Under the pieces are notes generated by a model, which was not told where the DNA came from, did no database searches, and was given only the letters and a program-made list of their open reading frames with translations. Made by a program: the position numbers and the translations under genes. DNA of 32,000 bases, taken from positions 1 to 32,000 of the forward strand of contig NW_008806277.1 in assembly GCF_000400465.1 (NCBI RefSeq), written 5' to 3'. This DNA comes from Wallemia ichthyophaga EXF-994. Its lineage: Eukaryota > Fungi > Basidiomycota. Positions 27,930 through 30,646 of the stretch are shown here, piece after piece (the stretch's first letter is position 1; each line of letters opens with the position of its first letter).

Positions 27930-29108
27930 ATGAGAATCACGCCTTCCCAGCTCAAGAACGCCTCCCCCACCGCCGTCGTTATGATGAACATGGGTGGTCC
28001 CGCCACACTCGACAACGTTCACTCATTCCTCTCAAACCTCTTCCACGATAAGGATCTAATCCCGCTGCCATTCCAATCAATTCTCGCCCCTAGAATCGCC
28101 AATAGACGTACACCCAAGATAAAGCAGCAGTACAAAGAAATCGGCGGCGGCTCACCCATCCTCCATTGGACACAGCGTCAGGGCGATGAAATGGTGAAGC
28201 TGCTGGACGAGCTCTCTCCTGCTACAGCCCCGCATAAGCCCTACATCGCATTCAGATATGTCGATCCTCTCACAAAAGACACGCTCGCGCAAATGAAACA
28301 CGATGGCGTCACTCGCGCTGTAGCGTTCACGCAATACCCCCAATACTCGTGCAGCACCACTGGGAGCAGTTTGAATGAGCTCTATCGCCAGATTCATGCG
28401 CTGGGCATAGACAAGGATATAAACTGGTCCATTATTGACAGATGGCCCAACCACCCACTCCTAGTTGAAGCTTTTGCGGAGAATGTCGCCAAGTCTTTGC
28501 GTAAGTATGCTCCTGAAGAACGTGGCAAAATCCCCATTCTCTTCTCTGCTCACTCGCTTCCGATGAGTGTGGTGAACAGGGGAGATCCGTATCCAGCAGA
28601 GGTAGCGTCTACGGTGCAAGCGGTAGTTAGTCGACTGCCTGGCCTCACTGGCCATACCAACCCACACCGACTCACCTGGCAGTCCCAAGTCGGGCCATCC
28701 GCCTGGCTCGGCCAGCAGACCTCCGATGCTATACAAGGTCTGCGCCGTCTCGGCTACACAAAGGCCCTCGTCGTCCCTATTGCTTTTACATCTGACCATA
28801 TTGAGACGCTGTACGAACTAGATCTCGAGTGCGTCGAGGAGGCTCGCGAGATCGGTCTCCAACTCGACCGCGTGGACAGCCTGAATGATAGCCCTGCTTT
28901 CGTGCGCGCTATCGCCGACCTCGCCGCTGAGCATCTGGGTAGTGTCTATCAGAATAAAGTGACAGACATCAGCCATACTGGTTACGTCGGCGGTTGGGTC
29001 CCGGGTCACCCTACCTCCACTCAATTCGCTCTCAGGTGTCCAGGATGCACCAATGATGTCTGCCTCAAACAGAAAAATTTCTTCAATCGCGGTAGTAGTG
29101 TTATATAG
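27930..29108 (+). CDS. HEM15: Ferrochelatase (protoheme ferro-lyase), intronless
   Basis: MMNMGGP, YKEIGGGSP, AFRYVDP, QYPQYSCSTTGSS, LFSAHSLP, WQSQVGP, FTSDHIETLYELD and C-terminal RCPGCTNDVC. ATG in ACCAACACC-ATG context. Confidence 0.96.
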   Translation: MRITPSQLKNASPTAVVMMNMGGPATLDNVHSFLSNLFHDKDLIPLPFQSILAPRIANRRTPKIKQQYKEIGGGSPILHWTQRQGDEMVKLLDELSPATAPHKPYIAFRYVDPLTKDTLAQMKHDGVTRAVAFTQYPQYSCSTTGSSLNELYRQIHALGIDKDINWSIIDRWPNHPLLVEAFAENVAKSLRKYAPEERGKIPILFSAHSLPMSVVNRGDPYPAEVASTVQAVVSRLPGLTGHTNPHRLTWQSQVGPSAWLGQQTSDAIQGLRRLGYTKALVVPIAFTSDHIETLYELDLECVEEAREIGLQLDRVDSLNDSPAFVRAIADLAAEHLGSVYQNKVTDISHTGYVGGWVPGHPTSTQFALRCPGCTNDVCLKQKNFFNRGSSVI

Positions 29109-29219: not shown

Positions 29220-29640
29220 TACAAATATTGATAATCTTCGCCTATCCATACTTCTTGTACATTGATAGCTAACGATTTTAGTGACTCAAAGGGATGCGGT
29301 TCTTGGCATGTGTGCCGTAAGTTGGGAGGTAACTACGTGGAGCTACCGAAGGCGCGCGGGTGGGTGTTGAGCTGGTTTTTGAAGAACTCGTAAAGGGTTT
29401 GTAGAGAGTGTGAGTTTCTGAGTAATGAACCTAATCCGAACTGAATATTTATCTTGGTAATTTTTCTTCATAATGTGATTTTGGCCATTATATGTCTTTT
29501 ATATATGAAAATTCTATGTGAGATGGTGTCCTCTGTGCCACAAGCATTGCATTGAGGTGAAGCAATCAATATGAAAACGTACAATGACTTGATTTTATGA
29601 ATATTTGCGTACACCTTTTGCGTTTCAATTGTATATATTT
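29220..29640 (-). mobile_element. Possible degenerate 3' remnant of a non-LTR (LINE-like) retroelement; boundaries approximate
   Basis: A minus-strand frame at about 29560-29516 reads SPQCNACGTEDTISHRIF, resembling the C-terminal C-x2-C-x7-H zinc knuckle of LINE ORF2 with the last Cys lost. Downstream frames are interrupted by stops. No RT core seen. Confidence 0.35.
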
Positions 29641-29670
29641 TTAAGCTGCAAAGGAATTCTCAGTTCAAAA

Positions 29671-29685
29671 TAACTCAACGGGAGT
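29671..29685 (+). promoter_or_regulatory. A-box-like element / D-arm relic in the leader of the permuted tRNA
   Basis: TAACTCAACGG (29671-29681) compared with the tRNA's own A box TGGCTCAATGG. ACTC-AACGG-GAGT forms a 4-bp hairpin. It lies 37 nt upstream of G53 of the B box. Confidence 0.6.
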
Positions 29686-29692
29686 AGCTGAT

Positions 29693-29768
29693 ATCGAAAG
29701 GTTGCAGGTTCGAGCCCTGCGTCGGTCACCACGGCCGGCTGGCTCAATGGTAGAGTATTCGACTACGG
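29693..29768 (+). tRNA. tRNA-Arg(ACG): Circularly permuted tRNA-Arg, anticodon ACG (29765-29767). 3' half 29693-29728, linker CCAC 29729-29732, 5' half 29733-29768; junction at canonical position 37/38
   Basis: Acceptor GGCCGGC/GTCGGTC (5 Watson-Crick + 2 G-U) with A73. D arm GCTC-AATGGTA-GAGT. Anticodon stem TTCGA/TCGAA (5 WC) with loop CT-ACG-G|A. Variable region AGGTT. T arm GCAGG-TTCGAGC-CCTGC. T8, A14, G18G19 and A15:T48 are all in place. Confidence 0.9.
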
Positions 29769-29779
29769 CATTGAAATAA

Positions 29780-29786
29780 TTTTTTT
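29780..29786 (+). terminator. RNA polymerase III oligo(dT) terminator
   Basis: A run of 7 T begins 11 nt after G37 of the 5' half. Confidence 0.75.
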
Positions 29787-29819
29787 CTTATTCACTTTAT
29801 AAGTGCGGCAGAATAACGA

Positions 29820-30646
29820 CCGTTATCATCAATTGCGTTTCACTCAAGCCAAATTTTTAGCCCTATCACTGACACTCACGTTTCAACATAAAAAGTGATA
29901 CGAACATAAAACTTTCTTCTCAAATGATTTAAGGTTTTGAAGTACTTGTATTATTTGCACGACTCTCGTTGGTTGTTTTCTAGATTTACATTATTAAGTG
30001 AATCCGGTTAAATGGCATCTGCATTGTTTTCTGAGCCACTACTATCTAAGCATTTTCGTTATTCCAATATTTCATAGCGTTTGAAATGGTTGAGATTGAG
30101 ACACTGTCTCTCAATCGAATACCCGTAGATTGTCTTTGGCAGCGTGAGGAAGAATTTAAAATGACCTGAAGCATTGGCAGAGTTTTAATTCTATTTCTTT
30201 AGGCCTTTTTTACACTCTTCACGTCAGCTCGTCACCCTCGAATTAAACCCCTCTTCGGAAAGGTTTCTGGGTTTCAGCTAGTAAGATTAACAGAATACTT
30301 GGAAGCAAAGTGACTACAAGAATTGTTTACTAAGGGATTTTCCAATGTGTGCTATGTGGGCGTCTATTAACCGAGCGTAGCTCAACGATACAGCCTCAAT
30401 CTTGCAGCAACATAGATTATCTCAGCAGGGAGCCTTGCGAAGGACTTCTTGTTGGATGTTTTGTCGTCTGTGGATTGCTTTGTCTTGGTGGTTGAGGTTA
30501 GATAGAGAGATGAAGTGAGGGATGGAGAGCAAACCTACCAGGAGTATCGCTCAAAGTGGACTTTGAACGGACTGCCAGATCTTAGTTGGAGTTCAGAAAG
30601 AGTTAAATGAGCGGAGATAAAGCTTACTGGGAGTAGCAAAGACCAT
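29820..30646 (-). pseudogene. Fragmented multi-exon coding-like region with an F-box-like motif; pseudogene or unresolved gene model, boundaries approximate
   Basis: ATG at 30646 followed by clear splice signals (GTAAGC..TAAG; GTAGGT..CTAAC). One frame reads KKSFARLPAEIIYVAARL (30441-30415). I could not build a stop-free model. Confidence 0.3.

Follow-up and report, generated by a model that had tools for sequence, protein, structure and literature searches.

Circularly permuted tRNA genes have been described, in the literature up to a 2026 review, only from unicellular algae and from one archaeon (PMC3978253, PMC13578239). Here, we focus on a gene of this kind for tRNA-Arg(ACG) in the basidiomycete fungus Wallemia ichthyophaga EXF-994, and on a short element in its leader, at positions 29671-29685, that resembles the D arm of the tRNA and with it the A box of a promoter for RNA polymerase III (Pol III). 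The gene lies in a window of 32,000 nucleotides (nt), which comprises positions 1 to 32,000 of contig NW_008806277.1. Literature on permuted tRNA and fungi, or on Wallemia and tRNA, yielded no case of a fungal permuted tRNA gene, and the gene thus appears to be an unreported one.

The closest described genes are the type II permuted genes of Cyanidioschyzon merolae, prasinophyte green algae and the Bigelowiella nucleomorph (PMC3978253), which like the Wallemia gene place the 3' half first, on one strand, with the junction at 37/38. Further features that algal permuted genes have in common with it are an upstream TATA-like sequence, a downstream T stretch, a spacer free of signals and an expected pathway through a circular intermediate (PMC3978253). 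Apart from the host, the differences concern the spacer, which measures 5-74 nt in algae and 1-4 nt in Wallemia, and which in two Wallemia species encodes CCA, unlike in the eukaryotic permuted examples. They also concern the promoter, as the algal genes are thought to be independent of TFIIIC, whereas the Wallemia gene has an A-box-like sequence upstream of its B box. The permuted tRNA-Tyr and tRNA-iMet genes of the archaeon Thermofilum pendens (PMC3218864, PMC3978253) likewise encode CCA and have a very short intervening sequence (1 and 7 nt), but their junction is at 59/60, they have an archaeal promoter and splicing endonuclease, and they contain additional introns.

Two groups of fungal genes are also comparable. 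RPR1, snR52 and ZOD1 of Saccharomyces cerevisiae have tRNA-type promoter elements in a 5' leader that is transcribed and then removed (PMC2566860). In those genes, the A and B boxes are both in the leader, whereas the Wallemia leader has an A-like element only and the B box is in the mature T arm. In dimeric co-transcribed tRNA genes (Ser-Met of Schizosaccharomyces pombe and the tandem tDNAs of hemiascomycetes), two units lie a few nt apart and rely on the A and B boxes of the upstream unit (PMC2566860). Unlike these complete units, the Wallemia gene consists of the inner 3' half and the inner 5' half only, which have to be rejoined. A dimeric gene is a plausible evolutionary precursor of a permuted one.

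Permuted tRNA genes have so far been regarded as a curiosity, confined to a few algae and a single archaeon, and their persistence has been ascribed to TFIIIC-free promoters. Wallemia is expected to use TFIIIC and a ruler-type splicing endonuclease. A permuted tRNA-Arg of the ICG type in a fungus raises the question of how transcription that depends on A and B boxes copes with an inverted internal promoter. It also raises the questions of how RNase P and 3' processing deal with a circular intermediate and an acceptor loop of 1-4 nt, and of how the processing of circles fits with the compartmentation of fungal tRNA splicing. The leader element is a concrete and mutable candidate answer to the first of these questions, and the system is open to experiment in heterologous Pol III assays in yeasts. 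The encoded CCA provides a second data point in the debate between duplication and retro-copying. The full picture, that of the first permuted tRNA gene outside algae and archaea, with a hybrid promoter that includes a surrogate A box in the leader and possibly with an origin as a CCA-tailed retro-copy, is doubtful as a whole.

A permuted tRNA-Arg(ACG) gene in four Wallemia lineages

The gene occupies positions 29693-29768 of the forward strand; its 3' half precedes its 5' half on the same strand, with the junction at 37/38. The 3' half reads A38, TCGAA, variable loop AGGTT, T arm GCAGG-TTCGAGC-CCTGC, acceptor GTCGGTC and discriminator A. The 5' half reads acceptor GGCCGGC, TG, D arm GCTC-AATGGTA-GAGT, A, TTCGA and CTACGG (anticodon ACG), and its D-arm segment, TGGCTCAATGGTAGAGT, is at 29740-29756. 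The B-box consensus, GGTTCGANNCC, has a single exact match in the window, at 29707-29717, within the T arm. As expected for a permuted gene, neither ARAGORN on the native order nor Rfam at gathering thresholds detected a tRNA in the window. When the halves were reassembled with 5' before 3', ARAGORN called a 72-nt tRNA-Arg(ACG), and it accepted the reassembled tRNA in six sequences. Below the threshold, the Rfam model of YrlA, a permuted and tRNA-like RNA, scored 28.6 bits, which reflects the order of T arm, acceptor and D arm.

The same permuted order was found downstream of the ferrochelatase gene in W. hederae (L001, 7780-7855), in six W. mellicola assemblies (L002-L007; 8050-8122 in L002) and in a divergent strain of W. 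ichthyophaga (L008). A scan of metagenomes for the permuted junction revealed a fourth lineage (L012, 384-456). Between species, the gene hardly varies, whereas its flanks cannot be aligned. The five distinct sequences form all 21 cloverleaf pairs (100%), including two double compensatory changes in W. hederae, at 28:42 (U-A to C-G) and at 3:70 (C-G to A-U), and a G-C to G-U change in a cloverleaf stem of one W. mellicola strain. A run of T5-T7 follows 9 to 18 nt past G37 in every lineage.

Within W. ichthyophaga, the window and L008 diverge by about 1% generally over the 2.1 kb compared, and by about 17-19% in the 90 nt on each side of the gene. The contrast between the gene and these flanks is sharp: 29571-29660 has 15 differences and 29773-29861 has about 17 events, whereas 29661-29772 has none, so that an invariant block of 112 nt lies inside a local excess of substitutions. 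Hypervariable flanks around an invariant gene are typical of highly transcribed tRNA genes. As the gene is syntenic, with complete cloverleaf pairing, compensatory changes and T-run terminators, and is invariant within hypervariable flanks, these comparisons indicate that it is highly likely to be functional. The original prediction that this is a permuted tRNA gene is borne out by the ARAGORN call on the reassembled halves and by the order conserved in four lineages.

Sequence and structure of the leader element

The original prediction held that the leader retains a relic D arm, by which the order of A box before B box could be restored. Its description of the sequence proved accurate. The segment TAACTCAACGG (29671-29681) followed by GAGT (29682-29685) is a near copy of the D-arm segment of the gene itself, the 4-bp ACTC/GAGT hairpin forms in the fold (-2.9 kcal/mol), and the distance from the T8 equivalent (29671) to G53 (29708) is 37 nt, compared with 44 nt in the 72-nt tRNA after reassembly. 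The flanking sequences TTCAAAA and GCTGAT indeed do not pair with the acceptor or anticodon stems. To this last point, the folds add that GCTG (29687-29690) pairs with C35-G36-G37 and the first trailer base, both with and without the cloverleaf constraint.

How closely does this element resemble a D arm? TAACTCAACGG deviates from the A-box consensus TRGCNNARYGG at one position (A at the G10 position), and a match with at most one mismatch has a chance of about 0.014 in a given 30-nt interval. The weak hairpin, with AACGG as its loop, is retained in the cloverleaf-constrained fold; 7 of 200 shuffles fold equally well. A local alignment of the leader with the 5' half of the gene itself, CTCAACGG--GAGTA with CTCAATGGTAGAGTA, has p of about 0.05-0.07 and requires a 2-nt gap. 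The Rfam tRNA model fits 29671-29720 as D arm plus T arm, weakly (13 bits, E = 9.5). Taken alone, the resemblance of the W. ichthyophaga element to a D arm is marginally beyond chance. Covariance models as support for a D-arm relic were dropped, as the model aligned W. mellicola differently (17.2 bits) and did not match the W. hederae leader.

The comparison of lineages supports the proposed role in part. The invariant block between the two W. ichthyophaga strains spans leader positions -32 to -1, the gene and trailer positions +1 to +4, and 32 unchanged leader bases have a probability of about 0.003 at the local rate, in this single strain pair. Among the six W. mellicola assemblies, the last 36 leader bases contain three variable sites, all within the equivalent element. 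These three polymorphisms fall on the degenerate A-box positions N12, N13 and Y16, and the same changes preserve pairing in the hairpin.

All four lineages have a core in common, T.A...ARYGG, which lies 21-30 bp ahead of the B box. We used ARYGG, the 3' part of the A-box consensus (A14 R15 Y16 G18 G19), as the anchor; relative to A38, it starts at -16 in W. ichthyophaga, -12 in W. hederae, -16 in W. mellicola and -21 in L012. The pseudo-A box anchored in this way reads TTATCCAGCGG in W. hederae, AGAACTAACGG in W. mellicola (AGAACCAATGG in strain L007) and TCATTCAATGG in L012. The T8 position is occupied by T in three of the four lineages, and the G10 position by A in all four. In the window, ARYGG has a frequency of 0.0037 per position, and its presence in the last 30-40 nt of four out of four leaders has a chance of 7e-5 to 2e-4 if the leaders are independent (8 of 200000 composition-preserving shuffles). 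The two most distant species have a near-identical AACT(C)AACGG, with the same offset in both. That ARYGG recurs is better read as the mark of a short core that was probably kept within otherwise scrambled leaders, and on these comparisons the leader element at 29671-29685 is very probably functional.

Cloverleaf-constrained folds revealed a common architecture, consisting of the anticodon stem, a small internal loop with the 3' cleavage site, a short leader helix and a distal leader-trailer pairing. In the short helix, leader positions -6/-5 to -3 form 3-4 bp with C35-G37; G(-3) is invariant, and the three core pairs are kept in five of five sequences, with changes that are one-sided. At the junction, which is at the canonical 37/38, the folds show a 3x3 internal loop and a helix of 3-4 bp, not a strict 3-4-3 bulge-helix-bulge. 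A strict bulge-helix-bulge with C32 paired to leader position -3 was rejected, as all lineages are better accounted for when -3 to -5 pair with C35-G37. The distal leader-trailer pairing is longest in W. hederae and L012, at 13-17 bp, followed by W. mellicola with 10 bp and the window with 5 bp, and it is missing from L008, where the trailer partner is mutated and the leader is unchanged.

The ARYGG core occupies different places in these folds. It lies in a hairpin loop in W. ichthyophaga, where each of the five core bases is unpaired with a probability of 0.99, and in W. mellicola, where this holds for the first three bases and the two G are mostly paired. In W. hederae and L012, by contrast, the whole core pairs with the trailer. 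The W. mellicola hairpin, GAAC-TAACG-GTTC, is at the analogous place; no leader hairpin was found in the folds of W. hederae or L012. Inspection of the mature sequence by eye identified no fixed and conserved partner for ARYGG in the mature tRNA. As the core is kept in differing structural contexts, and as the leader is invariant against a mutable trailer partner, a constraint at the level of sequence is favoured. This suggests that the leader core is constrained in its sequence rather than in its structure, which is why we rank a surrogate A box first among the readings of the element.

Some features of the W. mellicola leader stand apart from this comparison. A perfect 14-nt palindrome, TTTCGAT|ATCGAAA, spans the end of the leader and the start of the 3' half (L002, 8043-8056) and competes with the anticodon stem in the unconstrained fold. 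The end of this leader, TTCGA, is the sequence of the 5' strand of the anticodon stem.

Table 1. Features of the permuted tRNA-Arg(ACG) locus in the window
Feature	Position	Strand	Basis
TATA-like TATATA (29632-29637), then T5 run (29638-29642); candidate TFIIIB/TBP site	29632..29642	+	Read from sequence; function inferred
Leader block -32 to -1, invariant between two W. ichthyophaga strains; probable transcribed leader	29661..29692	+	Window compared with L008
Pseudo-A box TAACTCAACGG, 1 mismatch to TRGCNNARYGG (A at G10 position)	29671..29681	+	Consensus match
Leader hairpin ACTC-AACGG-GAGT, D-arm-like	29673..29685	+	-2.9 kcal/mol, z = -2.85
Leader strand GCTG, pairs with C35-G36-G37 and trailer +1; holds invariant G(-3)	29687..29690	+	Folds
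3' half: A38, anticodon-stem 3' strand, variable loop, T arm, acceptor 3' strand, discriminator A73	29693..29728	+	ARAGORN on reassembled halves, orthologue alignment, pair counts
B box GGTTCGAGCCC in T arm	29707..29717	+	Sole GGTTCRANNCC match in 32 kb; identical across all lineages
Spacer CCAC between A73 and G1, encodes CCA	29729..29732	+	Sequence
5' half, G1 to G37; genuine A box TGGCTCAATGG (29740-29750); anticodon ACG (29765-29767)	29733..29768	+	Sequence, ARAGORN, pair counts
Trailer CATTGAAATAA, then T7 Pol III terminator (29780-29786)	29769..29786	+	Read from sequence

Promoter, RNA structure or chance

A TATA-like or AT-rich stretch is present upstream of the gene in all lineages. 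AT-rich stretches at a distance similar to that in the window are T7A of W. hederae (-61 to -54) and GATATACA of L012 (about -60). Because a T5 run would stop Pol III, transcription would start downstream of 29638-29642. The TATATA at 29632-29637 predicts a start near 29662, 24-29 bp downstream of it. On average, Pol III starts about 10 bp upstream of the A-box boundary (PMC12409998), which for the leader element predicts a start at about 29661, the beginning of the invariant block. With a start at this place, the element would be at about +11 to +21 and the B box at about +47 to +57, while the genuine A box (29740-29750) sits 33 nt past the start of the B box. The original prediction had set this arrangement against the TATA-type promoters of algal permuted genes. 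This contrast was overstated, as TATATA lies about 24-29 bp before the predicted start; the leader element is at most an addition to the algal TATA model and not an alternative to it.

These observations can be combined into a model of expression. The intragenic B box (29707-29717) would anchor TFIIIC, and TFIIIC would use the leader core T.A...ARYGG, in the window TAACTCAACGG, in place of an A box, ahead of the B box. This surrogate A box and the TATA-like sequence would together position TFIIIB, with Pol III starting near 29651-29665 and ending at the T7 run at 29780-29786. The predicted transcript would contain, in order, the leader, the 3' half, CCAC, the 5' half and the trailer. For its processing, we draw on the algal pathway and on fungal enzymology: the tRNA splicing endonuclease may cut between positions 37 and 38, with the folded mature domain and the conserved helix of G(-3) as its guides, tRNA ligase may then circularise the RNA, and RNase P may open the circle at G1, with 3' trimming afterwards. 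Our tentative interpretation of the sequence data is that selection maintains the element at 29671-29685 within the leader of a functional permuted gene found across the genus, and that a role as surrogate A box is the best single explanation of this element.

Several observations weigh against a surrogate A box. In the four lineages, 25, 21, 25 and 30 bp separate the pseudo-A box from the B box, which is less than the natural range of 32-93 bp between A and B boxes in S. cerevisiae (PMC12409998). Binding of tau-A to A boxes is weak and depends mainly on DNA shape (PMC12409998), and strong selection on their sequence would therefore be unexpected. The match at 10 of 11 A-box positions is confined to W. 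ichthyophaga; the other lineages have three mismatches, which is about the level of shuffled leaders, and retain only T8, A14, R15, Y16, G18 and G19 of the consensus. The leader of W. hederae, the sister species, has neither a hairpin in its fold nor a match to the Rfam tRNA model. In three lineages, a copy of ARYGG pairs with the first bases of the trailer, next to the 5' cleavage site. Moreover, the ARYGG motif was fixed after two leaders had been seen, and the lineages share ancestry and hence are non-independent. The idea of a leader A box for TFIIIC that is more conserved than its flanks in orthologous loci is thus sustained in part: the element is in the probable transcribed leader, the leader is invariant within the species and the core is present in four of four lineages, whereas the full A-box match is found in one species only and the spacing is 21-30 bp.

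The pairing of the core with the trailer could also point to a role in the RNA. The element would then be a structural piece of a 'split intron' made up of leader and trailer. As a hairpin or helix strand, it would prevent mispairing between the leader and the mature domain and would offer the splice sites to endonuclease and ligase, and its likeness to a D arm or an A box would be incidental. We consider this reading fairly unlikely. Such a role would account for a hairpin that is more stable than its shuffles (z = -2.85) and survives constrained folding, for the hairpin at the same place in W. mellicola, where stem polymorphisms preserve the pairs (C to U and U to C opposite G), for the inclusion of the same bases in a leader-trailer helix of 13-17 bp in W. 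hederae and L012, and for the conservation of the adjacent helix of C35-G37 with its invariant G(-3). The structural context is not constant, though, as the core lies in a loop in W. ichthyophaga and W. mellicola and in a helix in W. hederae and L012, and the leader-trailer helix of W. ichthyophaga is weak and is broken in L008 by a trailer substitution while the leader stays invariant. Fungal splicing endonuclease relies on the mature domain and one anticodon-intron pair rather than on the structure of the intron. Furthermore, a helix of any sequence would do, which leaves the recurrence of ARYGG unexplained.

That recurrence also bears on whether the resemblance is due to chance, with the gene transcribed from the TATA-like element and the B box alone, as has been suggested for permuted genes of algae, and the leader kept for unrelated reasons or by sampling. 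The marginal alignment of the leader with the D arm of the gene, the gap in that alignment and the low score of the tRNA model are what such a chance resemblance would give, and W. hederae has neither a hairpin nor a good A-box match. The TATA-like or AT-rich stretches upstream in all lineages fit as well, and the evidence from within a species comes from a single strain pair. We nevertheless regard chance as distinctly unlikely, given ARYGG in all four leaders, 32 leader bases without a change next to a flank that differs by about 17%, and AACT(C)AACGG being near-identical at equal offset in the two most distant species.

Origin of the permutation and genomic setting

A further claim was that the element is a footprint of tandem duplication, that is, a physical remnant of the outer 5' half. 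Among the published models for permuted genes, tandem duplication is preferred (PMC3978253). In W. ichthyophaga, the leader aligns with the 5' half as described above, and the trailer ATTGAAA resembles the start of the 3' half, ATCGAAA; in L012, the leader and the D loop have the exact 8-mer TCAATGGT in common. The comparison of leader with 5' half gives p = 0.05 in W. ichthyophaga, 0.04 in L012, 0.86 in W. hederae and 0.91 in W. mellicola, and that of trailer with 3' half gives 0.07, 0.27, 0.99 and 0.25 in the same order. Combined by Fisher's method over both flanks and the four lineages, the result is about 0.1. The footprint is thus statistically unestablished, and neutral relics could not survive in flanks with saturated divergence: these are unalignable between species, their neutral sequence having been fully turned over.

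Because of this complete turnover, any likeness to a D arm must be maintained by selection. Selection for A-box function would create such likeness de novo, irrespective of the origin. The order of the pieces also argues against a colinear relic, since TTCAA, which resembles the anticodon stem, lies upstream of the D-arm-like hairpin in W. ichthyophaga. Taken together with the spacer, which can be explained without any outer half, we consider a relic unlikely.

In W. ichthyophaga and W. hederae the spacer reads CCAC, whereas W. mellicola and L012 have just one base there, an A. CCAC resembles a CCA tail, and a CCA encoded there by chance has a probability of 1/64. Among permuted genes, an encoded CCA is absent from those of algae and known only from archaeal ones (PMC3978253). 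It is expected under model C, the reverse transcription of a circularised, end-matured, CCA-tailed pre-tRNA that contains its intron (PMC3978253). The spacer hints that a retro-copy origin fits at least as well as duplication, and its CCA may be relevant both to 3'-end processing and to such an origin.

Directly upstream of the permuted tRNA gene, at 29345-29614 on the minus strand, lies a decayed, retroelement-like open reading frame (ORF) with an in-frame stop, the truncated 5' end of which points toward the tRNA gene. It has 57% identity over 74 aa (tblastn) to a peptide of L013, a Wallemia-like contig with ferrochelatase. The family of this peptide is multi-copy and turned up in ENA metagenome contigs only (P0121-P0126). 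A Pfam search with the minus-strand ORF gave zero matches; we take its CxxC...H...C tail to be like the C terminus of ORF2 of fungal non-LTR retrotransposons, which Pfam did not confirm. The ORF was rejected as a genuine gene, as it has no Pfam match and is part of a multi-copy repeat, and is regarded as the remnant of a mobile element. A faint trace of it is present at the equivalent place in W. hederae (L001, 7366-7532). The ORF shows only that such elements were active at the locus in the past.

The ferrochelatase ORF upstream (27930-29108) encodes a protein with 99% identity to that of W. ichthyophaga, 85% to that of W. hederae and 75% to that of W. mellicola. Across the 2.1 kb compared, the W. 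ichthyophaga reference contig KE007227.1 has zero differences from the window. The remaining ORFs of the window are presumably fungal as well, judging by their appearance (a Zn2Cys6 factor, the AP-2 mu subunit, an XPD helicase and a glycerol-3-phosphate dehydrogenase).

L013 was also tried as a fifth lineage. The permuted tRNA was not found in the 1.4 kb downstream of its ferrochelatase (1421-2834), where a repeat of the family of the 29345-29614 ORF is present in two inverted copies. Either the locus downstream of ferrochelatase differs across the group, or the L013 contig ends too early. In L012 (384-944), a hydrophobin homologue is located about 120 nt downstream of the permuted tRNA, whereas it is 3.5 kb away in W. 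mellicola. This proximity indicates a deletion, a rearrangement or a paralogous copy.

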